Shown here piece by piece: positions 1 through 59,343 of a DNA stretch of 59,563 nt (position 1 is the first letter of the stretch; each line of letters starts with the position of its first letter). This DNA comes from Pavona decussata (taxonomy: Eukaryota), in the NCBI GenBank assembly GCA_977016875.1, contig CDRNST010000213.1, forward strand, positions 1,116,001 to 1,175,563, written 5' to 3'. Position numbers and translations under genes: made by a program. The notes below the pieces were generated by a model. It ran no database searches. It was given only the letters and a program-made list of their open reading frames with translations, and was not told the DNA's origin.

Positions 1-138
1 GGACGAGAATGAAGAACAACCAGAAGACACTAACGGTCACTATTTCTCAGGCATGGTATAATGGCCCATATACCATGGTCGCTTAGCCAATTAAATTTCA
101 GGAATGGCGTTATACAATGATCCAGTTTTTATAGTTAC

Positions 139-401
139 CTTATACTGTAAACCTTGTTCAAGATCAATCACTCCCATGCCCTTCTTCCACCCATGGCCTT
201 GGTTTCCTGATTTGTAGAAGATATACCAACTTTTTCCATTTGATATGTCTAGCTTGACTGCCAGGCTTCCAACTGTGTGACCGTACATGTTGTAGTAGAA
301 TTTAAAACACTGCCCTCCTTGCCTGGTTGCCATCCAAGAGCTGACCAGTTCGGCTCTTTGGCCGCTTGTTGTCTGTGATGACTCCATGTAAAGGTAATAT
401 C
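139..401 (-). CDS. Astacin exon 11 (MAM domain); gene continues beyond window start
   Basis: GYYLYMESS...CFKFYYNMYG...GSL...GNQGHGWK; gtaac donor at 138. Confidence 0.9.
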
Positions 402-9400: not shown

Positions 9401-12400
9401 TTTGCCAGTTGTCCAAACCATCCTAATGTCAGCCGGGTGTTTATTTGTACCCGGTGTGAATTCGGGACCTGACGCTAGCAAGGTTATAATTTAAGCGACC
9501 ATNNNNNNNNNNNNNNNNNNNNNNNNNNNNNNNNNNNNNNNNNNNNNNNNNNNNNNNNNNNNNNNNNNNNNNNNNNNNNNNNNNNNNNNNNNNNNNNNNN
9601 NNNNNNNNNNNNNNNNNNNNNNNNNNNNNNNNNNNNNNNNNNNNNNNNNNNNNNNNNNNGGATTCCACGAGGTGGCTCTTCTATCCACTGTTTCCAGGTC
9701 GAATTGGAATTGGGAAATGCTCGTTTTTGTGGAGGGGGGAAGAGGTGAGTATTGGACATGCTCTGGGGGGACAATTACTTATATAATGCAAAACGAAATT
9801 AAATCTTTATAACCATGAGCTGTTTAATTGTTTTACAAGCTAAAAGGACCTCTGCTGTAATTGCCTTTACACTTGCTTATACACTTGCCTTGTCTCAAGG
9901 TAATATTACCGGAAAAGCAGGTTTTAATGATACAAAAAAACGTATGCCAGCAATTGCATAGATGTGTCTAGTGTGATAGTTTTTTTCTCTGTTGAACTTT
10001 ACTTTTTGTTATCAGTATTGTCTTCATTACTGCCTCCTGACTACGCACCAGCCACGTAAACAGTACAACAAATTAACACAATAACTGACAGACACCAGCA
10101 GTCTACAAATAAGCCCAAACCTGAACGACCCGGAACAGCCACTGATACACTGCAAAAACCAAAATTTTCAGAAAGATTGGCAACTGATCAGGTAAAGTTC
10201 CCGCAACATACCCGTGGCTGTTTCCAAACTCAATGTAGTTCTTGTGGTAAGCGCTGTTGTAGGGTACAAATCGAAGACAAGTGTAGCGATGAAACTCTTG
10301 AATGGCTTTCTGTACATTCGACGTCACGTGACCTAAATAGCAAAAAATATATACAGTATATATATTTTCTCGCAAATAAGATTCAGTGGGCTCTGTTCTA
10401 TGCATGCCTACTAATACAGAGATATTTTTGCGCAGTTTATTACTATGCTGGAAAAGCAGATCTTAGCAAGGGCTATTGGAATGCAAAAACAAAATTTGGG
10501 GTAACTACTCATTTTTTAGAGATAATTAAGAAACAATAATTCAAAAAAGTGTTAAAATACAAAGCAGTGTATGGCATTTTTTTTATCAAATTGATACGTT
10601 ATTATCTATGCAAAGGTCAATTGGTAAGTTCTGCTTTCTCCGCATAGTTTTAAACCATGCAAAAATATCCCTTTATTAGTAGGCACCCACCCATGCCATA
10701 GAAAATCGAGTATCTCGAGATGCGCAAAACGTATGCGCAGTAGCAAAAGTATGCACCGTCCTTAAAAGTGACTTTTGGTTTTTGAGAGATAGTAGTTAAT
10801 ATTTTGATTCCGTGAGGATAAGAGTGCCGATTTGGAAGATGAACTTATGTTCTAACCTCTTGCGGCTTCCTGTGATACCATGGTTAGGCAGGTGAAAGTG
10901 TCGAGCGACTGGTTTGAATGCATCTTTGTCATTTTTTTTCCAACGTCTCAAAGATATTTGCGAAATCGCGTTTGAATGAAATTAGTGAAGGTTGTCAAAT
11001 AATTGTACAAGTTTCAGGGTCATTTCGGAGCAAAAGCAAGTTCTATAAAATGATGCTTTTTACTGTATGGTTGTGTGGACGAAAGGTGATCAGCCGAATG
11101 GGCGCGGTGTCGTTTCCTTCGGACAGTAGAGACAATAGGGAGGTTAAGAATGACGTTTACGGCAAACAGCAAACGTGAGATATGACCACGTGACCATGTT
11201 TATCCTATATTTGCTGCTCGTTGTTTTCAGTTTCTCTGTCAAATCAAGTAGTTTTGCGTTGACATCAAAGGCCAGAATTCGTTTGCACTATATATTCTCA
11301 TCTTTGTACTCTTTATTTCAAGAAAACATAAATGCGAATCTCCCGTTTGCCGTTTGCCGTTTGCCGTTTGCCGCAAACGCAATTCTCAGTAGCTCCATTT
11401 GGCAAGTAATTCATGGTAAGGTACCATATAATCACCCACATAACCCTGACCCTAACCCTCCATATAGTCACCCTGATTTACAGAATTCCATCCGCTCGCG
11501 CACAAGGAAAAAAATTGTTATAATTACTTATCCATATTTCTCCTTTTTTGTGGTTTTACTGGAAGATTATAGCTCTCAGTAAAAGTCTACCAAAGACTTC
11601 CGAAATGGGAAAAGATCTCGTCATGTTCACATTTTCAACCTGGTGAAAGAAACACCCATCACCTATATGGACCGGGTCAGTCCCTGGTCACAACCTCCGA
11701 ATTCCGCCATTATATGAGCCACGCATGCAGTCTGGGTTTTCGACATGAAAACTTTCTCACTCTCCTTTGTTCTGGGTGCGGTAGCGGTCTCGGTGCAATA
11801 TAAAACAATAATTATTTCTTTTTGTTCACTATTTACAACAACAGCTTGTCGAGCCCTAGATATGGCAGTCCCCTTTCATCTCCTTTCCCCCAGCCCATCC
11901 CCAAAACGATATATGAAGTACTTACTCATCCAGGATGGGATCCGGTATGGGATAATTCGACTGGTCCACAGTCTCTTGCGTGATCTAATAGCGTTCCTTG
12001 AGTTGCCTCCAGTCTTTATGTAATACTGAAGTTCGGGATCCAAAATTATGTCACCTTGATAAAACTCGGAGATGTTTCCTAGAAGAGTAAATCAACACAA
12101 ACGTGAAGTTCCGGGCTAATATTAGAGCATTTCGAAAAGCTGAGTCGTACACGAAAGAAGCAGCACGATTAAAAGTTATTTCAAAAGAGACATAACATCG
12201 GAAACCTGCAAAGGTAGATCGCGCTCAAGTGAAATGACTAAATCAACAAAATAAATCATACAATGGTGGCTTTTAAACGTTTTTAGCCATCTGCAGAAAG
12301 CGGAACTCTTTTATCTTTCTTATAAGAGTAACCAGCGATGATGTATTGGGACATCAACTGCGATTTTATTGAGGTTTAAAAGCACTAGAACATCTTGCGC

Positions 12401-26839: not shown

Positions 26840-27192
26840 TTAAGCATCGTGTCGAAGTCTCTCTGACTCCGGCATATTCTCCAAGGACACCAGCCCGAGT
26901 TCGTTCATTACATGCCAGTTAACTTTTGCATAACCCATATTTGTTAAACATCTCATGACTTCTCTGATTGTTGCTTGATTTGTGTTCGCCTGGTACCACT
27001 TTAAAAGAGCAACTCGGCAGCATTCTTTTCCGCGGCCCTGTTCTTCGACTTGAATAGCATCAATTACAGGTTCTGGCACCTTCGGGTTGAGATCTCTGGC
27101 CAGTGTCTTCCATAAGCTACCCTGTTGCAATTTCTCAGCAACCACACGACGAACATCATTGCTGATCAGAGGTTGGTTGATCATCTCTTGAG
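26840..27192 (-). CDS. Exon 11: Death domain and stop codon
   Basis: VAEKL...WKTLARDL...IDAIQVE...ALLKW...ATIREVMRCL, Death-domain pattern. Confidence 0.88.
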
Positions 27193-30100
27193 CTAAGGAA
27201 AAAACAAATTTACATTAGAAAACGGCTAAAATCAATTTTCAACTTCGCGATTGGTGTCAAGTTTCCAACGTATGGCTATCTTAAACAACCCGAGTGTCTG
27301 GCTTTCTAAAAGTCAGAAAACGGCCACATCGTCGTAATCTGTTAGGAATTTTCAATAGTTCTGTCCCAGAGTATTAGCTTTGACTTAGAAGAATGTAGAT
27401 CTGACTTTAAAGTAAGAACCATCAGGAACCATTCCCGAGCAGGTTCTAATTTTTTAATAAAAGTCTACAATGATGTTTAACTCTGTAGTGAGGTGACCTT
27501 TTCCATTATTGTGTAAAATAAAAAGGAAAGATTGTTTTTAATTTTAGTAGCCTCATGGTCCTGTCTTATACATTCTCAATAAATCAGTTAAACAGTTGTA
27601 AGTCTGGCCCGCCAAGGTTAGCTCTCGCTACCTGCGGGCCAGTCTCTCTTTTTTGCTAAATTTTTGAAACTTGAAACTAAACTTGAAACTTATCACTTAT
27701 TAGCTGCTGGACAGTGTTTTCCAAGAACAATGTTTGACTGCTGAGATTTAAGGAGAAAGAAGGAATCTGAACATGGTTTGTGATTTATGACGTTTTAGTA
27801 GAGCCACCGGTAGAATGAAGGTTTTCAATAATCAAAAAAAACAAGGAGAGTCCCATAAACCTGCTGTTGTCAAATATACACGTACCTTCAATAAGACGAT
27901 CTTTTATGTGCTCCAGACCTGGACCACCTTCTTGTAGCTTATCAACGATATTATCAAAGCACTTTTGCTGGTCTTGTGGTGACAGTTTTGAAAGGGCCAT
28001 TAAAAACTTCTTCTTCACGTCTGCTTCAGGACATTTCGAAGCTAAATCCAAGTGATTGTTGTAAACATCGCCTTTACCAATCTCTTGTAAGACCCCACTG
28101 CATGCTGCCAAGATGCCATATGGACCCGTTAAAGGAGCGTCGTGAAGTGTCTCGTCGTCAAAAGGCAACCCGAAGAATTCTACAGGTGTTTTCTGCGAAT
28201 GGATCATAATTAATAGTTTTTTATTATTATTTATGTGAGAACGGCCACCGCCCTCGTAATGTATTTTCTTTCCTACCTTTCTCACATCCCCATCAAAAAA
28301 GTTTCGTCCAATCGAGCGGATTGATCGAGTCAGATGCAGTGCCGCGGCGCCCATGGGCTACGATCCAAAGGCACTGATATAATAGAAGCCTTGAAGCTCC
28401 TCTTCCGCCCTTTTTTTGGCATCAGCAGGGTATCATGGGGACGAAAGTCACAATCGGTTTCAGGTAACTACTTCTAGTCGTCAAATTCAAGTGTCACACA
28501 TTCGAATCACTTATTGCCATAGCTACAGGATTCAACAATCTTCTTTCTCTCTGATCACTTTCTAGAATCACACTGATTTGCTTATCACTTGTCAGTCATA
28601 ACACCCTTTCCTAAAGGCCCGTTTAAACGGTTTCAACATTTGACCAACATAAGTTCAACAAAAGTTGGACGAATGTTGGGAAAATGTCGGATAAATGTTG
28701 AATGGAATGTTCAAACGGCTTGAACAATCAACATTTTAGAGGGCAAAGGAAATGTTGAGTCGATGATGAATGAAAGTTCAGTCGATGTGCAGTTTGAGTC
28801 GATGATGAATGAATTAAATTTGATTCACCACGCTTTCAACAAGCTTTCAACATCTTTTACACTTTGAAAAATTTTGAACGACCCGTTGTAACGCCCTCGA
28901 CATTTGGTTCAACAAAGTGTTGAACGCATGTTGAAGCAAACCTTGAAACCGTTTAAAAGGGCCTTAAGCCCACTCCAAATAAGCGTCAACTTCCCAGAAA
29001 AAAGGTTCAGTGTTGAAATTTGTTTGTTTGTTTTGAAGAGAATAAAGACAAGCGGTCACCTAGACTCGACGATTATCACTGAATTGCTCAGTGACTCGAA
29101 TTAATACTCGGTCAAATTGGATACAAGTCTACAACATCCTTACTATCTCTAAATATTTTCCACCATTGTTAAGATTTCGAGGTAGTGTCTACTGTAGGAA
29201 GAACATTGTACATTACCAAAAAAGGATTTACATGTACCCTCTATTTAGCACTATGAAACGGAATGACGGACGAAACATCATCACCAAATTTCAATAAGTT
29301 TCATTAAAACTTCACTTAATTATCAGGAATTTTCCACAGAGAAAAAAGTTATACTTCTTCAAGTTGGGTGTTAAGGTATCAGTGTCAGACATCTTCAATA
29401 TAAAGAATATACATCGCGGTGTACCACTGTTCGCTAACGATTTTCATATTCGCTAGTCATTGTATGTTAGGGACATAAGTAGTACTTTGATTGTCAAAGA
29501 GTAAAGCCACTAAAAACAACTCTGTTATTATAAATTATTGCAATTGATAACAACACTTACACCAGGGTCATTAAATGTAGGAGGTAGTGTCAAATCCAGT
29601 ATGCAAAGCATATTGTCTTCATCTCGTTCTTGTTTTTTGCAGAACCAAACTGTCAACTCTTCACCAGCCACCAGCTGAACATTGAGATTCTTCCAACAAT
29701 AGTCCTCCTGAAAGCTGAAAACATGAACAAGATCGCTGTAAAGGGCAAAGATATTCATTAATATACGAGTTTTCCCAACAGGAGTCGAATCTATAACCTT
29801 CCCATTACTAGTACGGATGTTATATCATTTATTCAGCTGGCTTAAAACATAACACCACAATTAGCTCAGGCCAAGCGATCTAATATTTCCATTCAAAAAT
29901 GTGATGGAAAAACGTGTCTCCTATAAACTACACTTTAAGATGGTTCCCCAAATATGACCCACACCAAATGTTCTCGTCAATTAATAAATGTTCAGGAGAA
30001 ACGTCTCCTACAAAGAAGAGGAATACCGTCTCAGAAGGGTTGTTCAAACTAATCTTTGTGTTGTAATTTCTGTCAAGAATTTCAGCTCAATTTTTGCTGC

Positions 30101-33100
30101 GCGCTTTAACACTAAGAACTATAATTGCTACCCTTTTGGTTCAGAGTCTATTTTTGTGACCAAACACAACATATGTTGAATTCAAAATTAATTCGTTAGG
30201 ACTGTTCCTTGAACACTCCAAACACAAGTAAAACAAGGTATACCTTCGCTTGCAACATCTAAAAAACCGGATTTGATCAACAGTTGATTTCAACAGGGTT
30301 TCAGGAAAATGGTCATGGCCTATTCTGGAACGGATGGATGCCAACAAGAATGGTTTCTAAAAAAGGTAAATATCAACAAGTTTACATGAATTTCCTCACC
30401 TGATATGAAATCCTTGCAAGCGTTCCGCTCTTACAGGCCTAACGATACCGTCTGAAAGGAACACGTAAGCTTTGTCGTTGAGACACATTGGGTCGTCTGA
30501 GCTTCCGTCGTCTAACATGATATTACCATCCTCTTTCTCATTCGCTCGTACCTTATCTCTCTTTGAGGTTGGAGAGCAATACAGCCTCAGCTTTATCGTA
30601 CAATCAAGACGAGTGTCTTTTGGACCATAAGCTGCGAAAAATGCGGCTTTTCTTACACTTTCTGTGTTGGAACCACCAACTAATTCAGCAATGGGTCTCG
30701 CACACCACTCGACCCAACTCCAAAACCTGCAAACAAAAACGTGCATTGTTAAACTCACAATGTTATGTAGCAAAACATAAAACACCACGAAGCAAAACAA
30801 TTTGCAACTAGGCTACAGCAAATGCACCATTCAAAACCAAAACGTCACAGCTTCAATAAAAGCAAATAAAATTCAGATCAGAGATGAACATAAAAATGAA
30901 GCAAAACACTTAATTAGCTTGAGGATTTTCAAGACGAAAAGGTACTCAAAAACTATTTTCTTCAGAAATTATTTTGTTTGCTTGTTTCCAGTCACTTTTC
31001 TCTTTCGTTATGGGTGGGCGGTTGAAAGAAAAACAAACAACAAATTGACTTTTAAAAAAGACAACTGTTTCGCGTTGACTAAAGCAGTAAAGCAAAGAAT
31101 TTAGTTTGACGTACCCTGAAAAGTGCCTAACACTGAATTTGATGACAGCGCCATCAAAACTTGGGGTTGTCTCGAGTTCTTCTGTTATCTCAGTCCACTC
31201 CTGTTTGTAAGCTGCAGCACTTGATGAGTCTTTGAACCAGACCCGAACACGGACCAATGACAGGTCAGGAATGTCTAATCTCTGCTGCTCTCTCAATGAC
31301 AACGGAAGATGAATACTAACAGGTTCCATGAAATCGTGCTTCTTGGGACACGTTATTCTGAGTATGGGACCAGGCAACATTTGCTTGCCTTTGAAGGCTT
31401 TTTGGGGAAACTCCTGTACCTAAAGTATACCGTAATAAATGTATAAATAATCAAGCTTATTAATCAATTAATTAATTAATTAATTAATTAGTTATATACC
31501 TAATTATAGTCGAAATGTTAGATCTTCCCATATTTCAGATAAAAACATGTTTTCTCTTTTGCATATTTTTTCGAACCATATAATTAGGGGTATCGATTGG
31601 TCTTTGCAAGCATCCGCGTGCATGCGAATGTTAGTATGCATTCTTTGTCTAACTGTTCCACATCATTGACGTGCTACAGTCGTTCAGTTCGTTTGTGGAG
31701 GCTGATATCGATGCTTTCAAATCCAACGTTAGAAAACTTTCAAGGATGATCGATAGTAATAGATTAGTTCAGAAGCGTCAAGGTGTATTAACCGATTATT
31801 TCTCGAAAAAGTAAATCGCATGAACTCTGTAGCAGTAGCGCGACGTTTATCTCTTGGAAACCTGAACATTTTGTAGTACCTAGCCTTCTCCTGTTGCTTC
31901 GCTTTCTTTTGCTTCACGTTACGTTCTGATTTATATTATTTCACTAACAAATATCGTTCCCTTTTACTCAACTTTTCTGCAATTAAATCTGATTGAAATG
32001 TACACTGTATGAACAGAAATACACAGTAAACACCATTTTTTCCCTTACTTCAGGTCATTTGTTCTCAACTTCCGATAACTCGAACATTTTTACAGTGAGG
32101 AGCAATTTCACATTCTGCGTATGACAGCTATAATCATATTATTCTTAGCAAGCTTACCTTAACAATAACTTGCAGCTCTTCCTCTTGCTCAACAGCATTT
32201 GGGGGAAAAGCGATCCTCACAAGTGGATAATCAGGCAAACACAATTCAGTGCCCTTGGACGTGACAGTGTACTCGTAAGACTTGAGGCGGCAAACTACAG
32301 CAAATGTTGAGCACTGTGTTATCTTACTTACAGCAACTGGAAGGAGGTAGTCTGGAATATCGCTGAGAGAGGTGAGGTCTTTCATTAGATCTGAAACAAA
32401 CGGCATCCGCAGTGTTACAGTTGTCATAAAATAAAAATAAGTAATTAATTATCTCTTTGATATATACTTTTACTACGCCAGATATTTTTAAAAATTGTAT
32501 GCATTTAAAAATTATTATTATTATTTATTGTTATATTGTTAACCACTTAGTTAGAGTGCTTGGTTAATTGAGTCTGAAAAGCCCGTAGCAAGTACCTAAT
32601 AAAGATTATTATTAGTAAAAATCCATTGTAAAAAAACGACTCTTGTGCGATAAAATAAACAGCACAAAAAGAAAGAACTCTTAAGAAGTTCCTAATGTTT
32701 CGCCCTTTAGGAATTCTTTGGTAGACTAATTGGGACGTTGGAACGACCTTGTACTGCATAATAACAAATCAACAAAGAAGTTTCACTCCTCTCAAATCTG
32801 TTCAGTTGCTGCATTTTAGGATTTATGTAAGAACCACCATAATGAACAATCCCCTGAGCAATACCTTTAAATGAATATCCACATTTTACGATTTCGGCCA
32901 CAGACTCAAACTTAAGAATCACGTTGCACGATAAAATAAACAGCACCAACAGCGAGTATTGCTCAGAGGCCCGTCGGAGTCAATAAATTTTGCAGCTTAC
33001 GCACTTCGCTCACAACGATATACAAAGAAAGTGTAATATTTCTTACCAGCTAGTGACCGCAAGTCAACTGTTCCAAAAATGTCAACCCACTCATTGCTGT

Positions 33101-36100
33101 TACTGTCAATCAACATTTTTACCACCACTTCATATCCCTTTACGTCTGCCGCACAATGTGAAATCACTAAGGTGACTGCTTTGTTAAACCGCAGTCCTTC
33201 AGGGCTGTCGACCGATAGCTCAATGACGTCACTGACAATGGCTTCATTCCCATGCAGTGGTGGAGAGCGTGTCTGGGGATGCCATCTCAAGACAGTCACT
33301 GTCCTGTCTTCAGAAACAGCGTCAGCTGGGAATGTTACATGCGCCGCCACTTGCTTAAGGTCCCAGTGGGTACCTTGTTTGCTCACAGTCTCCCTGAAAA
33401 GTTACAAAAAATAAATAAAAGAAAATTCAATGGTTCTGGTGTCAACTGCTAAAACTGAATGATCAACGACATCATTTGCCACAGAACAACCGTATCATAA
33501 TTATGATTGGCCTTCTACCTACAGGCTGTTAAAACATAAACCGTAAGTAGTAAAAAGGTGATGAGTTCTGCTGTGCAGGTGCAATAAATTTCTTCGTACA
33601 TTTCTTAAATTCGCTAGCGTTCAAACGTAGGATTTTATCGACAAAGTAACCACAAAGGTAAAACCGTCAATACTTGATGGTTCATTATAGCATTCCTCGT
33701 GATTTCGGAATTATCGTTAAGGCCATGAACTCAGGTACGACAATTTTAAGCAGAAAGACTGTTGAAAGTATGCTGGCTGCAGATCTCTGTGATGTTTTTC
33801 AGTAATTACTTCCACTTCCTGTCGAGCCGAAGTCAAGGGAACTACGCGGAAGATATCATTATTTTTATTAAAAAGGCAAATTAACTTTTTTTATCTATAC
33901 ATACCCAATCAATGAACAAACATCGCGTTTTTCTGTTGTAAAATGAGAAAGAATGATGTTTCTCGTTGTGTGGGTGCTGTGTGTTTACTTACGGTGGATT
34001 CCTTTAATCCACACATATCTTTGCCAAGAAAAAAACAAAAATTTTCGAAGAGAGAAGAGAAAAGTTATTTGTTCGTCAAGTTTAACATATTGTAGTTTCT
34101 AATTGAAACAGAAGTATTTACCTAAAGATCTCGTCGTTTACGCCACTGAAATCATCTCCAAATCCAGTTTCTTCCTCAGATATCACATCATCAGATCCTA
34201 TTTCAAACTCTTCCTCAGGCTGCATCTCAGTCTCGTACTCAGATGTGACTTTGATCTCTTCTTCGTCGATGTCAATCACTTCTTCTTCACTCTCACTCTC
34301 ATCTGTCGAAGTGGTCGGAAGTCATGAGACGCACTACTAGCAATGCACTATTTACACAGTAAAACTTACAGCTGTAACCATGAAAACAAGTTCAAAGTAG
34401 TACCCGGTTTGAAATATTTTTTTTTATATACAAGAAGTCAAAAGATGCCATCATATGCCACTTAATGTATACTAAATTAACAAAGGGCTGTGGCAATTGG
34501 ATAAATTTCCGTGCTATGAAATCCACAAATGTTGTGGTGACGAAATCAGAATGACATGATCTGAAATTGGAGAACACCAGTTAACGATGATAATTTTCAG
34601 AAGTATAATAATGGCAATAGCGACTGACAAAATGTTGATAGCGAAGAGAAGGGGAGAGGAGGTTGAGGGGGAGGATGCGCGCTAATGAGACCGATACTGG
34701 TAAAGGAATGAAGACATAGAGACACAATCAAAATGATAAAGACGATTATGGTGTTAATGACTATGGTGACGGCGATCATAACGATTACGAAGAGGTTTGC
34801 GATTCGATTGTTACAATAAAAAATAACTATGATGATGACTATCATCATCATCATCAACACCATCATCATGATGCAGTAATATTGATTAAGACCATGTTTA
34901 GAAAAGTGATGAAAGTGGTAAAGATAAGCGTAAAGTAGAAAATGATGATTATGACTACACGTTAACATGAAAACACTGCTGTGGACATTAAGGACGAGAG
35001 GGAACACGAGAAAGTATAATCAGAAGGATTTTGTTATTTTTGCATGTAGATTTAACAAAGAAATGTACTTATTTACCTGTTGGTCTTAACGTGGCTCCTG
35101 GCTTTGTCCCGGTTTCGTTCAAAGTCTGAAAAAATATCAAAAAACATCATTCGTCTCCATTTACTTATTCATTTATTCATCTGCTGTCCGCTTAATAGAG
35201 GGTGTCCGCTTAATATGGGGTCCGCTAATTACAGATTTGACTGTATAAATCAATTTTTATAAACTAGCTTTAGTGATAACCGGTTTCAAAATTACTTCTC
35301 GTGTAGTTAATGCTGCGTTTATCTGTTGGTTTCTCTTCACGTCTTCTTTCCTCCTTTTGTAGGTTACGTCAATTTAACACTACCCAGTTTATACCCAAAC
35401 CCAAAACAGGACGGCCCAACAGTAAGTACATTTAGCGAGGTTTCACTGTATTTATTATTTACGCTCACTAACCCGTAAGGCAGCGTCATAGATTTTCACT
35501 CGCTTAAGGTTTCCAACTAAAGACGCCAGGTCTTTGAGCTCACGGAGGAACTCCTTCATCGTGGAAGATTCCATCTCAGCGTACTCCAGTTCCCACAGTC
35601 TCTCGTTGAATCTTAAAGCTTCTTCTCCATATCGTTTGCCAAGTTCCTTTTTCTCAAGTTCATGGCAGAGATGAAGAATGCCATCAATTGTTCTCTTTCT
35701 AGTTCTCATGATCTCCTTTGTCTCCTCTGCTCCTTTACTTTCTTTCCACTGTGTGAGCCAAGTCCTCAAGAGGTTTTCTCGGAATGTAGGGATACTTTCT
35801 TTTTCGTCTAGAGCTTGATACAGTTGTTCCACTTTACTCTTCAGCGTTGCTTTTTCATTTTCTTCTTCACCAACAAAGTCAGCCCTCTGCAGGAATTTTC
35901 TGTACAGACTCAACTTCTTCTGTTCGAGCTCTGAACGTTTTTCGTTCTGATTTAACTGAGAGCAAAAGCCAATTATCATGTCCAGTAACTCACTTCTCTC
36001 TGTAAGCATTGCATTAAGTTCTTCGTTATCTGTTTCCTGATCAAACGCCTGGTAAAAATCTTCCTCCGTTCCATTTTGAAATCCTTCATAAAACCACAGT

Positions 36101-39100
36101 CTTTCTTCTTCATACTCGCCCCTTGTATCTCTGCTTTCATCCTCGTCATCAAGTAGTTCCATTATGTTATCAATGATTGTTTTGTTATATTCAGTGAAGC
36201 CAAACTGAGAGGACTCTTTCTCTTCTTTCCAGAAACGCTTACAAAACGTTAAGGCATCGCGCCTAAAAGATTTTCTCTCCTGCCGAATGTTTTCTTTCTC
36301 CTTTTTCTTACTTTGTTGCCTATCTAAAAGATCACACATATCATTCACACCCTTGATGATCAAGTTCCACACTGCACTGTGGTTGCCGGGATCGAGCAAT
36401 TCCTCCATTTCCCATGCTTTGCGAAACAGATCTAAAGCTTTCTTAAACTCTCTTAAGTTTGCCTGAATCACGCCTTGTTGAAAAATGCTTCGCACCGTAT
36501 CGGGATGATTTCCAAGCCGTTTGTTTCTTATGTTGTAAGCCTTCTCTGCTAATTCAGCAGCTTCTGCGAACTTTTTTTGACGAACATAAACATTTGCAAG
36601 ATTCCTGCAGAAGAGTGCTTCATCTTCGTACCCTGTAATTTTGAGTTCTTCTAGAAGTTTCAGTGCATCTTTGTAACATTTAACAGCCTTGTCATATTCT
36701 CCTTGATCCTCGTGCACCGTGCCAATTTGATTTATGTACACTGGCATGTCATAGTGACTCTCCGAACCCTTTGACAGTTCCTTTCGCATGTTCAGTGCTT
36801 CTGTGTAGTACTCAAGAGCTTTCTGTGGTTTGTCAAGACCATAATAGCAGTTTCCCATAGCGTTGTAGCACCTGGCAAGGTTGGTGTCAACTTTCAGCAG
36901 CTCTTTTGTAAGGTCTAAAGACGACTGCAGGCATTCTAGTGCTTTCTTGTAATCTTTGCTTTGACAATGGATTTCCCCTTCAAAGTACTTGAAAAGTCCT
37001 TGAGTTAGCTTGAAAGATTCCGTGGTTTGATCTTGAACTTTTCCCAGTGAAGAAGCTGCTTGTTGTAATACTTCAAAAGCTTTACGAGGACCGCCATCTT
37101 CTAAAACCTGCCGAGCTTCCCAGCATCGTAACTGAGCTCGGAATAGAGAACCTGCGGAGAGAAAAAAACAAGCAAACTTACCACAATGAACCATTTTTAG
37201 TGTAGCTCGTATAACGAATTTAAATGTGCCAAAAATCGTCAGAGTAACTGCCCAAAATACGCCGTAGGTGCCAAAATTACCGCAACCGAGAGTATCCCAT
37301 TTGAATATGAAATCCGATGAGGCCGAGAATAATTAAGGATTCAGGGGCACCGAACGAGAAAATAAATGAAATTGGGAGATTGAGGCGGATAATACAAACT
37401 GGGGCCTCGATAAGTTAGCAGCATCTTCCAAAAAACGAGCGCTATATTTGCTAACACTACTTCACATTTTAAACACTAGCTAATTTAGAACTAAACTTTA
37501 GCAGTGTAATGTAGATTTTTTTTTGTAGATTGTGGAATCTTGTCAATCCTTTCCCACTGAAGCTAATTAAACAGTCAACAAATGGCATGACTTCACCTCA
37601 ACACGAATAAGTCTATCTGCATATATGCCTTATTCCAGTCGTTACAAAGCTAACAGAGCTAACGGTTTATCACATGTTTTCACCTTCTCGGCAACTTATG
37701 TTCATTGGAAACATTGTGTTAAAGGAGGCAGTCAAGAACTGCAAGTAGTAAATGGGGTTACCGCACGTGGCAATTTGGGGTATTTGACTGTCAAATATTA
37801 CTTTACTATAACCGTCAAAATTCTCGCGCGCTGATTGGCTCATAGCATATGCTTCTGCTTGTAGCTACAACGAGAAAAACAGCTGGATGTAGTACAACAA
37901 ACGACTCGACCATTATTTCGCGGCGAATGAAAGTACGAACAACAACAAGAAGCGAACGGTACTGCGAAGCGCATGTGGAGCGAAAACTGACAAGTTAATC
38001 AGAAATTTGGTATATCCAAGGAAGCCTACCAACAAGTCGTTTGCAGAGTTCGTCAACGTAGTGAAGAATCATCAAAATCCAAGACCCTCTTCAATCGCCT
38101 ATCACTTGAGTTTTGAACATTATAATTATGACGTCATTTTTATGGTCTATAAGAGTATGTATAGACCAAAGAAAAATGCAGTTGATTTGTTAAATATCAC
38201 TTGACACACTAAATAGCAGATGATAAATAAATAAGCCAATTCATGTGATGATCACTTCATATAAATTTTAAAGTAAAAATTTAAAAACCAATCAAAGTTA
38301 AAAGAGAACATGTTAAGACAACGCAAAATGTATTTTCACCAACAACAAAGAATGGTGTGTTCGTCACAAGGAAAAAAATTGCCTTAATAAAAGTTCTGAC
38401 TCCCCAGTGAGTCAGTGACGGACAAGACGCTTGTTTGTGAGAGACATAGAAACACAACCCCATAGAACAATAGCTGCAAACAACATGCAGTCCAGAGTAA
38501 TGTTAAAAACGGGTGGGGGGAGGGGTAGTGCCATGCATTGTATAAAAGTGACAGGGTGATCATTGTACCTTTTAGAATTACAATACGTGGTCTGGTATCC
38601 TTAAGGGTGCTAAAATCTAAAATGACTTCCGTCAGAGGTATAGTGGTACATTTTAGGGTTTTGAGCCAAAAAATGGTGGGGGGGGGGGGGGGAATTTCAG
38701 TAAATGTCAGTCAACTGATTTGGTACCTCTTACGGAATAGAAAATTATTTGTACCACACCCACAAAACAAAATTCTGGTACCTTTTACAGGCTCTTTTCA
38801 AAATTTCAGCCCAAGCACTTTTTTATGGGTGTCCTCCCCTCCCTTGTAATAAAAGATCCACAGGTCACATGTCTCTTCATACCAGAAGATTCATGAACAG
38901 TTTGAAAACTTTACATAGCATAATAAATCTTCAAGTACAAGAACTTACATGTAAAAGAACTTATTTGTGCAACAGAGCTTACCACAACTTACTAATAGTT
39001 CAGTGGAAGAGTGTTCAACCAGTGACATGGAAGCTCATCTATGAAGGTTTGATACCCCAAAGATTTTCTATGCGGTCTGTATTATGACAAAATGTAGCAT

Positions 39101-40590
39101 TCCCTATAACCACAAATTCTCAGCCACAATGTTTACAATGAAATAATATAAATCCCAGAACCAACCACACTTTTACTATTGTGAAGTTCCACAAAATAAT
39201 TTTATCCCACTCCTCACCCTTGATGGAAGGTCCCCATTAATTCTGAGGGGGTTGGAGGCATCAAGGACAAAAAACTCCAATGGGGGAGGGGGGTGAGGTA
39301 AGGGTCTAATTTGGAATAGAAAAATTCTTCCTTTGGGCGTTGACAGCTGTGCAGTACTTAAAACATGCAAGGATAAGGGTAGGTCCAAAAGCATTGTGTA
39401 AAGTGCTGGCAAAAACTAAGGTTCCTACTTCATGATTCAAAGTAGGCGAAAAATTTCTCAAGGGGTAGGGAGTGGAAGTTCAGGATAAAACAACCTTCAG
39501 TTGTGAGGTTAAAGGGAAAGGGGGTTAAAGGTTTGAGCAGCAGATCAGAGGCATTGTGTAAAGTAGTGACTTAATCAGCATAAAAAAAAAACACTGCAGA
39601 GTTGCAACAGGTGCATTCTCGTGAATGCCTTAGTGTTAATATTGTGACCAAAATTTAACTTGCCCATATTATTAGTATAAATAGAACAAAAACTATCATT
39701 ATAACATTGGTATTCTAAAAAAGGTTAGGCATGTCTTAAACAGGCATAATTCAATTGATACATGTATTTATAGGTAATTAATTGAACCCTACTTAACATA
39801 ATTATTGTTGTATTGTTTGGGACTCTATAGGTGAGACCCATATTAAAAGTCTTCAAAAACTTCAAAACTTTACGGCACAGATTATTACCGGTGCTTCATT
39901 TTAAACATGATCAAACAATGTTCTTGGTCACCTATTGGTTGAATTTAGCTGAACAGAGACGATATCAAAAGGCCATAACGCTGTTTAAAATAATCAGTCA
40001 TCTGACGCCATGCTTACTGATACTAGTTCTCTAAGTGATTACAGATTACGTTCTTCCAGGATGTAGAAGAACTAAAGTTCAACCTGACTATTTCAAAAAT
40101 AGTTTCGCATTTACAGGTGCAAAACCTTGGAGCAATCTTCCAAATTCTCTTAAGGAAGAAAACTCCGGTGATAGGTTAAAGAGTAAACTGAAGTTATTTT
40201 CACTATTGCCATCAACTATTTGTCTGAATAGCCTGTAGTTTCTTGGCCAGTGTAAAAGTTTAACTAATCTATATACTGATTTTATGCAAACCAAATTTTA
40301 ATAATTCTTGTATTTCAAATGTTTGATAAAATACACCTTATTCCAAAATAGCTACCATTTTAACATTCTATTGTTGGTATTCAAATTAGCCCTTCTTACC
40401 TCGTTCTTAAGCTCAAAAATCAAAAGAATATTTTATCTTGAACGAGGCAAGAAGGGCTAATTTAAATGCAAACAGAAGAATATTAAAATGGCAGCCATTT
40501 TGGAATAAGATTTATGCCCTGTTGAGATAAAGATATCTACCTACCTAGTACCTACCTACCTTACCAACCTACCCACCTACAAGCTATCGC

Positions 40591-40632
<42 letters not shown>

Positions 40633-43600
40633 CAATTTAGTTGGATCTACATGGATAACTTTTTGGCTGTAAGAAATGTCTTTTTTCCATGATTTATGGT
40701 TTTTACAAAAAAACATACAGGGAGGATAAATTATGATTATACTGTAAGTCATGGAGGGGAAAATTTTCTTAACTAACAATGCACTTTGTTCACCTTTAGG
40801 AATTTGCGTCATTGTTGTACATGTACCACTTGATTTCCAAGTATTTTTGGACAATCTGGCTTAGAACATCAAACACCAAAGAGCCTGAAAGAAGTCGTTA
40901 TTGTCATGGCACAAAAAACTTAATTTAGAAATGGCAAGCTTAAGCCAATCAGGGGCAAGTGTTTTTGCAACTCGACCAATCAGGAGTGAGTAATTTTACC
41001 CTAGGTGAAAGAAAAATTAAGGAAATATGTCCTCTGTTTCGACCAATCAGCATTCAGTAATTTTACCATCCACGTTACAAATTTATAATTAGTATAGACC
41101 ACACAAGTGAATAGTACTTTTCGCGCACGCTGATTAGCTCAGAGGTGATCACCCAAGTACTATTCACCTCCACGTAGCCGAAGAGGAACAAGATGGCCTC
41201 ACGTTTCGCCATGGTTACTTAAGAGGAAATTATGTCAATAAACAATGCGGCTGTTAAAAAAAAAGACATAAATGGGAACAAAGTTTGGCTAACCAGCATT
41301 AAATGGTAAGTTGTTTAACCTTTTCAGCCTCATATTCTAAAGCATAAAATAAAAGTGCAATCCTTTGCTTACAAAAACTGCAGAGCACTAAAATTACAAT
41401 GAAAACAATGAAATTTCTAATATTTTCCAGCATGGTTTCAAGAACAAGACAAATTTCACAGAAAAATTACACTGCAGGAACTAAACAAGTGTCTCCAAAA
41501 GTTTTATTTGTCTACAAGAAAGCGAGACGGAACTTTCTACAATAAGAAATCGCTTACCATGTGGCGGGCAAGATTTTTAAATTTCATACTCTTTGTCAGT
41601 ATATTGTCAGAAATAAAATAATTTTTTTGTTCCACTAGTTATTCAGCTTGTGTGGTATGTGCTAAAAACCATTATTTACCTCAGCGTCAGCGAAAGTGAT
41701 GGATTTATTTACTTTGCCGCTTCGTGGCTTGGTAAATATCCATCACTATTCACCTCCACTTCAGTGATTGTTAATTATTTAACAGTCAGCATGTGGCACA
41801 ACATGTACATGAAATGTTTGTGTTGAAATCTTTAGTCTTATGCCCCACAAAATCACATTCAAGTAATATTTGCACCACTAAAGTCTATCATTAATGATCT
41901 TGGTAAAACAATACAAAAAGTACATTATGTAACAAACTGAATTTAGTTAAAATTTAAAAAAGCGATCTCTGGCTAAAATGATTAAAAACTACGAGCTTTC
42001 AACTGCCTGAACTGCAGTCTTTGACGGGTAAAATGAGTGATGAAAAAGCGATGAGAAAAAATTTTTTTTAACAAAAAATGTGAATTGCAAAATAATAAAA
42101 ATGTAAATAATTATAAATGTTTGTTAAAAAGAATGTTATATTGTCCAGGTAACAGACAAGAATTGTTATCTACATTAGGTGTCACTTTGGTATGCCACGC
42201 TTCTAATGTTTTCCTGGTTCTGAAGGTGTCTTTGTCAATAATTGATGCGTTTTCAAAATGACATGGTTGTTGGACCAGGCATGATTAGCAATTCTAGAAC
42301 CTTTGGCCGCAGTTTTGGTGTTCCTTAAATATTCTTTCTTTTTGGGTATTGAAAGCTCTGCCGGTTTCCCCAATGTAACATACACCACGAACAATTTTAT
42401 ACACGACATTGGTCCGCGATTCCATGGAAGATCAAAATCTTGGAGCTGGAACTGTTGTTGTAGTTTGGTAAATGGTTTGCTTACAACTGTGTCTTCATGT
42501 TTGTTGAGGATACGTGTCAAAGATTCAGTTACTTCCTTGATGTAAGGCTGAGAAGCGAAAGGCTTGTGATTCGGTTGGTTTGACTATTTTAAAAAACATT
42601 CCAACAAGTTCCTCTGGGGATACATTTGTTGTTGAGGATCGGGTTTTTTATTAGCCTGTATAATGTTTTGGATAAACTAGGTGGATAACCATTGAACTCC
42701 AGAGCTGCATGAACATAATTAAGTTCCCGCTTTTTTCCTTCGGAGGAATTGGTAGATTTAGGGCTCTGTGCAGAGGAGTTGATGCTGAGCTGGCTTTGTG
42801 TTGAATATGTCATGATGGGAATTAAAGTCTAAGTATCTGTCTGTGTGGGTGGGTTTTCTGTAAACATCAACAGCGATGACTCTATTTCTACGGGAGACCA
42901 GAGTGTCTAGGAAGGAAATCTTTTTTGTTACATTCAGTCTCGATGGTAAACGAGATGTTTGTATCAATAATTTATTGAATTTAATGTTTCATGGAGGGCT
43001 GAGACGTCGTCTTTTGTAATGATACAAAAACTAGTCTATCGTCAACATATCGTTTCCAAATTTTGGGGGGAACGGATGAATTACTGATTGCAGACTCTTT
43101 GATCTCCTCCATGCAGAGATTGGCCACAACTAGGCGGACAGGACTGCCCATCATGCAGCCATGGACTTGTTTGTAAATTCTGTCATTGAACACAAAATAG
43201 TTGTTGGACAAGGTGAATTGTAGAAGTGCGGTGATGTCATCAATGTCAAAATTTGTCCTTGAAGAAAGAGTAGCGTCTCGTTTAAGTTTCTTTTTTATGT
43301 AATCACACGCTTTATCTACAGGAAGTGAACAATGATAGGACATCAAAAGAGACCAAAACTTCATTGTCATCAATTTCGATATCAGATAATTCTTTGGAAA
43401 ACTGCAAGAAGTTAGTAACAGAGTATCCGTCACGATTTTGAAGCAGAGAAAGGATATACCTTAGGAATTTGGACGTGTTGTAAAGTGTTGAGCCAATACA
43501 GATGACGATGGGCCTCAGAGGGTTCCCTTCTTTATGGTGCTTAACAGAACCGCGAATCACTGGTGGTGCGCCATCAATTGAGTGAAGTTTGCGGTATGTT

Positions 43601-45862
43601 GGTTCATCTACAGTAATCTTTTGTTTTCTCTTTAACAAAAGAAGCAAAGCGTTCAGTTGACGTTCAATTTGGCAGAAAGGAGATGTGGAAACCACTTCAT
43701 AGAACGCTTTGCTTCTGAGTTTTTAATCATTTTAGCCAGAGATCGCTTTCTTAAATTTTAAATGTTTCATCCTGGCTACAGCCCCTCAATATTTTTACAT
43801 AAACTGAATTTAATTCAACAGGCATATTTTTTCAATTTCCAGTATTAGCAATTGACAACAACAATAGGTACTAGCTAGACTGCTTTACTGCAATCAGCTA
43901 CCAGTCCATATTAAACACACCTGTGACATAAAGCATCAGATCCTACTTACATGATATAAGTGTGTTGACATCAGGTCCTGAAATAAATTCTCACTACTAA
44001 AAATCTGATAAATTTTGGAATCTGTTGAAATTTTGCTTAAATAACAACTTTAATTGTCATCTCTCGTGATTTACATAATAGTCATACATGTATGATTACT
44101 GTTATTGTGCAGTCAGCACTCCACCCATTGATGCCGCTTTAACAACTCATATTATGGTATTAGTGGGAAAGAATATCATACCTGACTGTCCATCATCTTC
44201 ACACATGTCAGCCCAGGAATGAAACAGCTCTGTCTGTTTTGCACTGGAAAGCATAGCATTGACAAGGGATGCAATCAAGGCATTATCGTGGAATTCACCA
44301 GGTACACTGAAAAACTTGGGCAGCAGGGTGATTTCAATTGCAAACTCATAGTTTGGCCGGTCATTTGAAAACAGATTGAATGCCTTGACATAGTCAGACT
44401 CTATGAATCCAGCAATTCTTTTCATCTCTGACATGAAGTGGTCATAAAATCGTTCCTTTGCTCTGGTGTAGGATTCAGTGAATTTTGCATCGTCCTTAAT
44501 GCTGCCAGCATACTTTCTAAGGAGTGGATGAATGTCATACATAAACTCCTTCGCTTCGCGATTTACAACAAAAATGATGGCACTGGTTACTAGGCCTTCA
44601 AGTCGTGCTACAGCCTCTGGATGGCTGATGTTCAGAACTTTTGCTGCAGTAGAAGCAGTAAAGGGGCCACAAAACAGAGAAATTGAGACAGCTGCTACTT
44701 TCAGGCTGTCAGATGGCAGGGTATTGAACATTTCTTCAATCACAGATGCTTCATCTTCATCAACTCCTTCTTTTTCCAAATCAAATGCTTTTTCTTTAGC
44801 ATCCTCTGCTGATTTGGACTGCACTGGAAGAGCTGCAGCCTTCTCTTTTGAAGCCACAAGTCTTTCAAGTTCATCCACCAGATCACTGGGAGCTTTTCTA
44901 CCCTGCATCAAAATAGCTTCCACACCTTTGAGAAGCAGTGGCTTTCCTTTGCATGCGGCAAGTAGCTTCTGCTTCTGCTGAGTACTAACATCAGATGTCT
45001 CCTTAGAAAGCAGGATTTTCTCTGAAAAAGAATCTTTCAGAGGTTTCAGTTCATAATCTGACACTTGTTTTACATCCTGCAATTGAGTTCTTGATGTCAG
45101 AAGGATGCTTAAACCTTTAACTTTACTACTGTCATCTAATTGTGAAAGCTTCCCCAGAAACATCATAAAAGCTGTCTTCAAGTTCCTGCCTTCCTTCCCC
45201 TCTCCAGCAGTGAACTGTTCCACGTTGTCCAGTAGAAAGAGAACACGCTTGCCCTTGCTTTGTTCTCCAATGTGCTCATGAATTTTGTCAACAACATTGT
45301 TCAAGCTTACGTAGCCAACCGGAACAGAAAGTTCAAGGGTATTCAAGATATTAAGATATATTGTCCTCGTGTCTTTAGCCTCCCTTAAGTCGAAAACAAA
45401 AGAATTTCCTCGCCATTCTGCACAAATCTCTTTGGCAAGCGTTGTCTTTCCTACTCCAGCCGAGCCGTGTAAGTTGACAACCGATCGCTGCCCTGTTTCA
45501 AGTCTTTTCCTAATATTCTTGAAATCGTCGCTCCTTCCCTGCAATTCCTTCTCCCGATCAGCTTGAGGCGGAAGAGAGGCCTTGAAATTGTCAATAGAGT
45601 CACTGATGTCCTTTTCTTTGTTTGACTTCGTCGCCACAAACTCTTTGACAACGGTTAGGTTCGTTTCCGACACATAACGAAGCTTGCACAAAAGGTTCAA
45701 ACATGAGAGCAGATCTTGATTATCTAGCGAATCAAATTGCTCTCCAAAAATCCTTTTAGAAGACTCCACAACATCTTCCGATTCCTCTGGAGAAAACTTC
45801 AAAGATATGTGTCTGAAAAGGCGATTTAACGCAAGCGAACTCTCCACAAATGTAGACGCCAT
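26840..45862 (-). CDS. NLR-like STAND ATPase-TPR protein fused to a PIDD1-like ZU5-ZU5-UPA-Death module (~1871 aa, 11 exons)
   Basis: Exons 45862-44182, 37151-35473, 35125-35077, 34302-34122, 33393-33047, 32390-32158, 31419-31115, 30726-30400, 29714-29561, 28192-27886, 27192-26840. All have GT-AG sites and compatible phases; total 5616 nt = 1871 aa plus TAA. Confidence 0.8.
27886..28192 (-). CDS. Exon 10: helical domain, unassigned (possibly death-fold)
   Basis: Open 307-nt exon, phase 0/1, KTPVEFFGLPF...IKDRLIE. Confidence 0.72.
28612..28967. mobile_element. MITE
   Basis: AAGGCCCGTTTAAACGGTTTCAA...TTGAAACCGTTTAAAAGGGCCTT TIRs with internal TTCAACA repeats. Confidence 0.7.
29561..29714 (-). 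CDS. Exon 9: end of UPA-like domain
   Basis: FQEDYCW...LCILDLTLP; gtaagt donor. Confidence 0.75.
30400..30726 (-). CDS. Exon 8: UPA-like domain
   Basis: Phase 2/2 exon FWSW...FFAAY...LRLYC...; lies directly after HFS, as UPA does in PIDD1/UNC5/ankyrin. Confidence 0.75.
31115..31419 (-). CDS. Exon 7: ZU5 domain 2 ending in the HFS motif
   Basis: GPILRI...FMEPVSIHLP...WTEIT...FSVRHFSG. Confidence 0.88.
32158..32390 (-). CDS. Exon 6: end of ZU5-1 and start of ZU5-2
   Basis: ITQCSTFAVVCRL...VTSKGTEL...PLVRIAFPPNAV, resembling the PIDD1/ankyrin ZU5-ZU5 junction. Confidence 0.85.
33047..33393 (-). CDS. Exon 5: ZU5 domain 1
   Basis: VTFPADAV...PPLHGNEAIVSDVIEL...EGLRFNKAVTLVISHC, ZU5 pattern. 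Confidence 0.88.
34122..34302 (-). CDS. Exon 4: acidic linker
   Basis: DESESEEEVIDIDEEEIK...DDFSGVNDEIF; phase 1/2; AG|gtaaat donor. Confidence 0.78.
35077..35125 (-). CDS. Exon 3: 49-nt linker
   Basis: ttttttcag acceptor; TLNETGTKPGATLRPT; AG|gtaaat donor; bridges phase 0 to phase 1. Confidence 0.7.
35473..37151 (-). CDS. Exon 2: TPR repeats and charged helical repeats
   Basis: LARCYNAMGNCY...ALEYYTEAL; LGNHPDTVRS (kinesin-light-chain-type TPR); ccgcag acceptor in phase 1. Confidence 0.9.
39690..40240 (+). mobile_element. LINE (L2/CR1) RT C-terminal relic
   Basis: LIEPYL....VW, LQKLQ, KNSFAFTGAKPWSNLP remnants. Confidence 0.5.
40335..40512. mobile_element. Palindromic MITE
   Basis: CTTATTCCAAAAT...ATTTTGGAATAAG with inner complementary arms. 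Confidence 0.65.
40590..40632. repeat. (TCTG)n microsatellite
   Basis: Directly visible. Confidence 0.9.
41090..41780 (+). mobile_element. Crypton-like non-autonomous relic
   Basis: MASRF..., an intron (gtaagt...ttccag), then ELNKCLQKFYLSTRKRDGTFYNKKSL; imperfect inverted ends. Confidence 0.5.
41946..43800 (-). mobile_element. Degenerate Penelope-like retroelement in intron 1 of the STAND gene
   Basis: Frameshifted RT (PLRPIV, G..MGSP, WKRYVDD, VYRKPTHTDRYL) and GIY-YIG remnant. Short inverted terminal copy (43718-43760 vs 41948-41990). AAACTGAATTTA is duplicated at 41934-41945 and 43801-43812. Confidence 0.88.
44182..45862 (-). CDS. Exon 1: DED-like N-terminus, STAND (NB-ARC-like) ATPase, winged helix
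   Basis: Walker A GSAGVGKT (45466-45443), Walker B VLFLLDNVE, sensor ILLTSR, GxP-like CKGKPL, MHD-like YDIHPLLR; gtatga donor, phase 1. Confidence 0.9.
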
Positions 45863-50158: not shown

Positions 50159-50368
50159 NNNNNNNNNNNNNNNNNNNNNNNNNNNNNNNNNNNNNNNNNN
50201 NNNNNNNNNNNNNNNNNNNNNNNNNNNNNNNNNNNNNNNNNNNNNNNNNNNNNNNNNNNNNNNNNNNNNNNNNNNNNNNNNNNNNNNNNNNNNNNNNNNN
50301 NNNNNNNNNNNNNNNNNNNNNNNNNNNNNNNNNNNNNNNNNNNNNNNNNNNNNNNNNNNNNNNNNNNN
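50159..50368. other. Assembly gap
   Basis: Run of N. Confidence 1.
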
Positions 50369-57250: not shown

Positions 57251-57664
57251 CTGAAAAATTAGGAGTCATGAGAACAAACTAACCCACAAATATACATCGA
57301 GCCTTGTAATAAGAGGACTTAAGGACAGAAAAGAAATCTAGAATAAAACTTCCATAAAGTGAAAGAAATTATGGCAACTATTGCCAGTTGCAAGCAGAAA
57401 AACTAAAATAATTCAGTCAATAAAAGGCAATGTAGTTTGCACTGTGTTGTCACTTGTCAATCAATCCCAGCAAAAGTGTATCAACGTCCTAGGAGATATT
57501 AAATCGAACATTATGTTGAAGAATTTCGACACTACATGGTATCTACAGTGTAATACCTTGGTAAATAGAAATTAGCTACAAAAAGTAACGGGATTTCGAC
57601 CTGAACTTTTACTTTTTACTCATTCGAGAATGAAAGGAAGACGGACATGAAATTGAAGCTTTAC

Positions 57665-58892: not shown

Positions 58893-59343
58893 CTGCAACA
58901 AAATACAACAGGCTATTACAAAAATCTTAGTTTGATTCACAGTAACTAAATATATGCCTCACACATTAAAAAGAGATTACAAGGACATGAAAGGACGACG
59001 TTACGCAGATAAATCTTATACATTTTAACCGCTACAATTGTTCATATATTACGAGTGTGGCTATTTTAAAGTTTAGCAGCTACTTTTGAAAGCCGTTTCT
59101 CAGGCTCTGTCAGTGGCAAAACCGTTCACACAGTACTGGCGAATCCACAGAAACGTTGAAAATCTGAAAACTCAGTGACATATCATTTTGTTTAAAGAGA
59201 ATACCTTTCAGAAATGGTTATTCTTGAATACCAAAACCGATTTGTACTAACGTAATGTTGTAACCTACGTTATTCCTTTTTGTCGGTGGTACACTGAATT
59301 CATGATCTTTGATATATTTCATCATATAATGTAAAATACTTAC

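Follow-up and report, generated by a model that had tools for sequence, protein, structure and literature searches.

In vertebrates, self-cleavage of ZU5 domains controls signaling through the PIDDosome and the NLRP1/CARD8 inflammasomes. PIDD1 carries an HFSW sequence after each of its two ZU5 domains and is cut at both (S446 and S588) through an N-to-O acyl shift (PMC3210808; bioRxiv 10.1101/2025.06.23.660994; PMC9162469), and the mechanism of UNC5CL is as in PIDD1 (PMC7883297). Rat NLRP1 is cleaved between F968 and S969 (bioRxiv 10.1101/2020.08.13.250241), and latrophilin (CL1) between L837 and T838, where H836 probably acts as the base (PMC3321182). For ZU5 self-cleavage outside vertebrates, there are so far only predictions made from domain catalogues (PMC8195603, PMC8260672): Kaur et al. 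put forward autoproteolysis as a prediction for ZU5/FIIND proteins of invertebrates and described a GT4 expansion in corals (PMC8195603), and in surveys of cnidarians, NLR-like proteins were listed with ZU5, Death, and glycosyltransferase domains (PMC8260672). Here, we analyze a stretch of 59,563 nucleotides from the stony coral Pavona decussata (assembly GCA_977016875.1, contig CDRNST010000213.1, positions 1,116,001 to 1,175,563), hereafter the window. Its minus strand encodes a multidomain protein with a His-Phe-Ser motif near the end of its second ZU5 domain (ZU5-2), where we predict that the chain cuts itself. We found no description of this coral family or of its motif in the literature.

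The His-Phe-Ser motif and its splice junction

On the minus strand, the codons CAC (31125-31123, His), TTT (31122-31120, Phe), and TCA (31119-31117, Ser) are followed by GG (31116-31115), the opening two bases of a glycine codon that is split by an intron. Exon 7 begins at 30726, where the preceding intron ends in a polypyrimidine tract followed by CAG; the opening G of the exon supplies the third base of the glycine codon, and FWSWVEWC follows. The spliced reading across the junction of exons 6 and 7 is ...FSVRHFSGFWSW, FSVRHFSGFW. Annotated spliced coral orthologs contain an uninterrupted HFS-x-[FLY]W-x-[WL]V[DE]WC, and since they carry the same string unbroken, the spliced reading is independently supported. 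An initial sequence-only reading of the window had proposed both the HFS codons and the spliced FSVRHFSGFW; we read the same codons and the same spliced string, with a GT donor and an acceptor at the junction, and the ortholog proteins agree. By itself, the tripeptide HFS is unremarkable, as the window's six-frame translation contains it 20 times. Within the whole 1858-codon gene, HF[S/C/T] is found just once, as His1476-Ser1478, in a homologous conserved column.

The motif lies at the boundary between ZU5-2 and UPA

When the exon carrying the motif (the HFS exon) and the exon encoding the first part of UPA were each searched alone, neither matched any Pfam family, and a phmmer search of the HFS exon against PDB sequences returned chance matches only. 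Because single exons are too short and too divergent, profiles were needed. A profile built from 34 family sequences matched the ZU5-ZU5-UPA tandem of ankyrin-1/2/3 over positions 17-470, with E values from 1e-21 to 4e-19, and aligned the coral string k-h-F-s-r-f-w over N-V-S-A-R-F-W in the ankyrins. This alignment sets the motif at the ZU5C/UPA boundary, where ankyrins have neither the Phe nor the Ser. The sequence-only reading had named the ZU5-2/UPA boundary as well, and it was confirmed by the profile search against solved structures and by a fold search.

The structural work was carried out on the coral ortholog P0136, which is 56-64% identical to the window gene in the ZU5 exons and 42-51% identical in the UPA exon. 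An AlphaFold model of its residues 1192-1674 (predicted local distance difference test, pLDDT, 81; predicted template modeling score, pTM, 0.73) matched the ZU5-ZU5-UPA-Death domain structure of ankyrin-B (ZZUD) with a Foldseek E value of 2.7e-27 and a VIA Z of 25.2. The same model matched UNC5b with a Z of 15.1, the UPA of rat NLRP1 with a Z of 12.2, and the UPA of CARD8 with a Z of 10.8. Similarly, a model restricted to ZU5-2 (P0136:1345-1505; pLDDT 85.6) matched ankyrin ZU5 domains (Z 11-15) and UNC5b (Z 9.6). In this ZU5-2 model, Phe144-Ser145 forms a two-residue turn between strands 136-143 and 146-153.

The motif occupies the modeled position of the scissile bond

When the ZU5-2 model is aligned to chains whose last residue borders a cleavage site, the alignment ends precisely at residue 144, the Phe of this turn. 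The cleaved targets were the ZU5 chain of rat NLRP1 (7crv_A, residues 70-187), the GAIN domain of latrophilin-1, ending at 837, and GPR56, ending at 382; chain B of 7crv has 142 residues ending at 329 and so starts at 188. Uncleaved chains (BAI2, BAI3, and UNC5b) align on through model residue 154, and in the alignment of UNC5b 541-687 to model residues 4-154, Phe144 falls on Leu677, the residue that corresponds to F296 of CARD8 (PMC3210808). The equivalence of sites is read here from the ends of the alignment ranges, not from residue-by-residue superposition, and equivalence to PIDD1 from the shared ZU5 frame and published statements (PMC3210808, PMC9162469). On the model, the motif thus lies in a tight turn that precedes the final beta-strand of ZU5-2, the place at which self-cleaving ZU5 and GAIN proteins have their scissile bond. 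The ZU5-2 model also superposes on GAIN subdomain B with Z 6.5-8.9 and with the cleavage positions coinciding, which suggests that ZU5 and GAIN share a common autoproteolytic fold.

The position after the bond alternates among nucleophiles

To place the gene in its family, we searched 1.84 billion representative sequences with a profile of the HFS exon and its paralogs. It retrieved 109 proteins, all of them coral proteins or unnamed fragments; PIDD1, UNC5, and ankyrin were not reached by this profile among the representatives. The long annotated homologs (n = 28) are found in Montipora, Acropora, and Stylophora. Conservation was counted over 105 relatives, all scleractinian, and the tree was built without the motif columns. 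At the -2 position, 67 relatives have His, 22 have Arg, and 16 another residue, while the -1 position is Phe in 91%, the remainder being mostly Leu. The +1 position is Ser in 76, Cys in 18, Thr in 6, and something else in 5; Ala and Gly never occur there, and Ser, Cys, or Thr together account for 100 of the 105 (95%). On the tree, the +1 state changes at least 16 times, with at most five of these changes leading to a non-nucleophile. Such interchange among three residues capable of an acyl shift is what the sequences of a catalytic nucleophile would be predicted to show, and not those of a structural turn residue.

Eight family members were found in the same genome (602 Mb searched, 1180 contigs): the window gene with HFS, four with RFS, two identical copies with GFF, and one with HFC. 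The seven paralogs of the HFS exon lie on the window's own contig (C213) at 1.227, 1.279, 1.299, and 1.332 Mb, on contig C106 at 0.222 and 0.350 Mb, and on contig C121 at 0.666 Mb. Those on C213 form a same-strand array of four, and the two on C106, identical in the HFS exon, read Gly-Phe-Phe and have lost the nucleophile. The phase-2 intron behind the motif is common to all eight; in the seven paralogs, reading through it gives G-Y-V where GG runs into GTA. A ZU5-2 profile searched over this genome returned the same eight loci only, and no ankyrin, UNC5, or PIDD-like gene. It is uncertain whether the RFS paralogs are cleaved, because BAI3, which has Arg at -2, is uncleaved in its crystal (PMC3321182), whereas mutating the -2 position of Nup98 and CARD8 reduced cleavage only mildly (PMC3210808). 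The window gene has the full triad.

A single cut is expected

The first ZU5 domain (ZU5-1) ends in ITQCSTFAVV, where, in an internal alignment with the second site, Gln-Cys-Ser (32311-32319, minus strand) replaces His-Phe-Ser. Gln-Cys-Ser is kept at this site across the NB-ARC-TPR clade, and a few distant members have SFS or RFS. The Phe anchor is essential in PIDD1 and CARD8 (PMC3210808), and because it is missing here, no cut is expected at site 1. Judged from its sequence, the coral protein is therefore expected to be cut once, as opposed to twice in PIDD1.

Proposed self-cleavage and alternative explanations

What the analysis shows is the structure of the gene, the folds of its domains, where the motif lies, and how it is conserved, and we consider it probable that the protein cleaves itself between Phe1477 and Ser1478. 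The chemistry, the continued association of the fragments, and the signaling downstream are inferred, and the mechanism of the cut would most likely resemble that of PIDD1 and Nup98. The buried side chain of Phe would strain the backbone, the His at -2 would activate the hydroxyl of Ser, and Ser would attack the carbonyl of Phe in an N-to-O acyl shift, after which the ester would be hydrolyzed. The predicted products are a sensor fragment of ~1477 residues (NTPase-TPR-ZU5-ZU5) and a UPA-linker-Death fragment, S1478-A1858; counting from Ser1478 to Ala1858 gives 381 residues, in line with the C-terminal fragment of about 380 that had been put forward from the sequence. The new N-terminus of this fragment would read SGFWSWVEW..., in the peptide SGFWSWVEWCAR. 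The strand SGFWSWVEW would keep the two pieces joined non-covalently until activation, which would free the UPA-Death fragment for death-fold signaling. Release may come with oligomerization, in a PIDD-like manner, or with the loss of the N-terminal fragment, as in NLRP1.

Several points weigh against this interpretation. Cleavage is a prediction from sequence and model, and the closest matches in both sequence and structure are ankyrins, which do not self-cleave. Arg stands at -2 in 22 of the 105 relatives, four of them paralogs in the same genome, so either cleavage does not need the His or some family members are inactive. For structure, the comparison relied on the ortholog P0136 and on range ends, PIDD1 and UNC5CL were compared through the literature, and this copy of the gene is known from genomic sequence alone.

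If the chain stayed uncut, the ZU5-UPA junction could serve structure alone, as a hinge like that of ankyrins and UNC5 receptors, with HFS kept for folding. The ankyrins' place as best matches would fit such a hinge, as would the variation of the -2 His (Arg in 21%) and the loss of the nucleophile in a few relatives (NFF, GFF, RLN, and HLK), by which loss is seen to be tolerated. However, ankyrins have Val-Ser-Ala at this place and UNC5b has Leu, so that neither has the Phe anchor or the +1 nucleophile (UNC5b: PMC3210808), and if the Ser were a structural turn residue, replacement by Ala, Gly, or Asn would be expected over time, whereas the changes seen here are to Cys or Thr alone, in at least 11 independent events; we regard the hinge as unlikely. 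Even less plausible, indeed very improbable, is that the window copy, as one of a tandem family, is decaying or not expressed, so that its motif is intact but has no present function. Eight members in the genome, five of them on the window's contig, and a retroelement-like frame in intron 1 speak for it, but 1858 codons are open over ten exons with canonical splice sites, the Walker A motif is intact, and identity to the orthologs is even over the whole length.

A different question is what a cut at Phe1477-Ser1478 would serve. It is conceivable, though on balance doubtful, that the cut occurs but arms a tripwire of the NLRP1 type rather than a platform of the PIDD1 type: the pieces would remain locked, UPA-Death would be freed only by destruction or unfolding of the NTPase-TPR-ZU5 part, and it would then polymerize via UPA. 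The combination of a STAND NTPase, repeats, ZU5-UPA, and a death-fold domain parallels NLRP1, a single functional site is predicted, and the UPA region matches the UPA of rat NLRP1 and CARD8 (Z 10.8-12.2). Against this stand a motif of the PIDD1/Nup98/GAIN type, with His at -2, and an invariant Trp 26 positions before the Ser, where, by sequence offset and not by superposition, rat NLRP1 has its catalytic His942. In addition, Pfam FIIND is unmatched at E <= 1, and the domain behind UPA is Death, not CARD.

Gene model and domain architecture

The gene has 10 coding exons on the minus strand, spanning 26840-45862 and comprising 5574 nucleotides, or 1858 codons (Table 1). All introns are GT-AG, and none of the ten exons contains an in-phase stop. 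We derived the exon map from splice-site reading and from exon-by-exon comparison with full-length coral proteins; the donor of exon 2, picked by phase, makes the least certain junction. The encoded domains follow in the order N-terminal helical region, NB-ARC/NACHT-type NTPase, TPR, acidic linker, ZU5, ZU5, UPA, linker, and Death. The exons are collinear with "uncharacterized" Montipora and Acropora proteins of 1700-1990 residues, at 42-64% identity, for example with P0136 (1876 residues), and annotated orthologs back the continuity of the STAND NTPase and the repeats behind it in one chain.

Exon 1 encodes an N-terminal helical region of ~130 residues and a P-loop STAND NTPase with an intact Walker A motif, GSAGVGKT. 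It matches NB-ARC (E 1.6e-8) and NACHT (E 1.6e-7) in Pfam and is collinear with residues 1-563 of coral orthologs at 58-64% identity. Pfam gave no match for the first ~130 codons ahead of the P-loop (window 45862-45480, minus strand), for the acidic linker of exon 3, or for the UPA-Death linker of exon 9, which the sequence-only reading had labeled helical, and Pfam scans of the exons found no leucine-rich repeats (LRR), the N-terminal half consisting of NB-ARC/NACHT and TPR. Exons 7-8 are together 42-58% identical to the UPA region of orthologs. Inside the 7-kb intron 1, translation of 42206-43722 (minus strand) reads as open frames with a reverse-transcriptase-like YVDD, probably an inserted retroelement.

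Table 1. Features of the coral gene, in window coordinates, with the observations on which each assignment is based.
Feature	Position	Strand	Basis
Coding exon 1	44182..45862	-	start codon 45862-45860; GT donor, no stops
Coding exon 2, TPR region	35463..37151	-	Pfam TPR_12 E 5e-34; 54-56% identity to orthologs; AG/GT, phase consistent
Coding exon 3, acidic linker	34122..34302	-	open frame; AG/GT, phase consistent; acidic stretch at the equivalent place in orthologs
Coding exon 4, most of ZU5-1	33047..33393	-	Pfam ZU5 E 5e-8; 62-67% identity to orthologs; splice sites read
Coding exon 5, end of ZU5-1 and start of ZU5-2	32158..32390	-	weak Pfam ZU5 match for the start of ZU5-2, E 0.014
Coding exon 6, remaining ZU5-2, ending ...FSVRHFS + GG	31115..31419	-	56-57% identity to orthologs; family profile aligns to ankyrin ZU5C
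His1476-Phe1477-Ser1478 codons	31117..31125	-	direct reading; predicted scissile bond Phe1477-Ser1478
Phase-2 intron right behind the HFS motif	30727..31114	-	GTACGT (from 31114)...TTTGCAG
Coding exon 7, last strand of ZU5-2 (FWSWVEWC) and first part of UPA	30400..30726	-	42-51% identity to orthologs; profile aligns to ankyrin UPA
Coding exon 8, end of UPA	29561..29714	-	splice sites, ortholog comparison; within the profile's alignment to ankyrin UPA
Coding exon 9, UPA-to-Death linker	27886..28192	-	splice sites; 54-61% identity to orthologs
Coding exon 10, Death domain and TAA stop (26842-26840)	26840..27192	-	Pfam Death E 9.4e-7; 55-61% identity to orthologs

GT4 partners and neighboring features

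A 449-codon open frame at window 57612-58958 (minus strand) matches the Pfam family GT4-conflict, a glycosyltransferase (E 3.7e-79), and shares 47% identity with the GT4 domain at the N-terminus of P0151 from Acropora palmata. That protein is a GT4-ZU5-ZU5-UPA isoform from a locus that also encodes TPR-ZU5-Death isoforms. The window's GT4 frame shares the strand of the NB-ARC exon and sits on its 5' side; it could serve the gene as an alternative first coding exon or belong to the end of an adjacent gene. Among family members, GT4 is C-terminal to a Thr-Phe-Cys junction in the transcript-derived P0126 and P0041, and N-terminal in P0151 and in P0162, which has two GT4 domains. The idea that GT4 always lies downstream of the cut is ruled out by these N-terminal cases, P0126 having it on the C-terminal side.

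Elsewhere in the window, open frames at 94-5362 and 9111-10462 (minus strand) resemble a secreted metalloprotease gene on translation, with the zinc motif HEMMHAIG, WSxW/CSxTC repeats like those of thrombospondin type 1, and a MAM-like segment. Runs of N occupy 9503-9659 (157 bases) and 50159-50368 (210 bases).

Implications for coral immunity

The gene offers a concrete, testable cnidarian case of ZU5 self-cleavage, in which the full His-Phe-Ser triad is found in a single-chain NTPase-TPR-ZU5-ZU5-UPA-Death protein, and its paralogs, with RFS, HFC, HFT, and GFF, form a natural mutant series. If the prediction is true, cut-and-release death-fold signaling either predates the cnidarian-bilaterian split or arose by convergence, and research on coral immunity would gain a defined activation step to assay. 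A bolder idea, which we offer as speculation and consider rather unlikely, is that scleractinian corals evolved their own cut-and-release immune sensors. These would be built on an autopeptidase cassette, ZU5-ZU5-UPA, in which Ser, Cys, and Thr can replace one another as the nucleophile, together with a swappable front end (NB-ARC-TPR or GT4) and a swappable back end (Death or GT4). In that case, cnidarians would have come to an NLRP1-like tripwire on their own and linked it to effectors that vertebrates are not known to have.

Comparison with known systems

The C-terminal order ZU5-ZU5-UPA-Death is common to the coral protein and PIDD1 (LRR-ZU5-ZU5-UPA-Death). Compared by its published motif, PIDD1 also has the same His-Phe-Ser, with His at -2, at the ZU5-2/UPA boundary, and its PIDD1-CC product (588-910) is comparable to the 381-residue UPA-Death product predicted for the coral protein. 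The two differ at the N-terminus, where PIDD1 has LRR and the coral protein NB-ARC-TPR, and in the ~100 additional residues that the coral protein has between UPA and Death. Moreover, PIDD1 has two HFS sites, one after each ZU5, whereas site 1 of the coral protein is Gln-Cys-Ser, so that no intermediate like PIDD-C would be expected. UNC5CL (ZU5-UPA-Death) has been described as self-cleaving in the manner of PIDD1 (PMC7883297); set against it by description, the coral protein differs from this membrane protein, which has a single ZU5 and no NTPase.

Over the full tandem, the best match is the ZU5-ZU5-UPA-Death region of ankyrins (E 1e-21; Z 25), and R-F-W after the site is common to both. Ankyrins, however, have Val-Ser-Ala where the coral protein has His-Phe-Ser, they do not self-cleave, and the context of ANK repeats and spectrin binding is not shared. 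The trait of the uncleaved ankyrin/UNC5 type, a junction with neither Phe anchor nor nucleophile, does not fit the coral family. The GAIN domain of adhesion GPCRs (G protein-coupled receptors), cut between Leu and Thr of His-Leu-Thr, follows the same logic of His, hydrophobic residue, and nucleophile before the last strand as the coral ZU5-2; it is extracellular, stands in another domain context, and has no detectable sequence similarity to the coral protein.

In the FIIND of NLRP1 and CARD8 (ZU5-UPA, cut between Phe and Ser of Ser-Phe-Ser), the self-cleaving unit is flanked by a STAND NTPase with repeats on one side and a death-fold domain on the other, as predicted for the coral protein, and on the model the Phe of the coral motif corresponds to the residue at which the cleaved ZU5 chain of rat NLRP1 ends. 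The coral protein differs in having two ZU5 domains, His at -2 where NLRP1 and CARD8 have Ser, and, by sequence offset, Trp at the place of the distal catalytic His (rat H942), and in having Death and TPR where NLRP1 has CARD and LRR repeats; neither FIIND nor UPA-FIIND of Pfam was matched at E <= 1 in 34 family members. By analogy, the logic of the coral protein, with its one predicted cut, is closer to that of NLRP1, and its putative chemistry, with His at -2, to that of PIDD1, Nup98, and GAIN.

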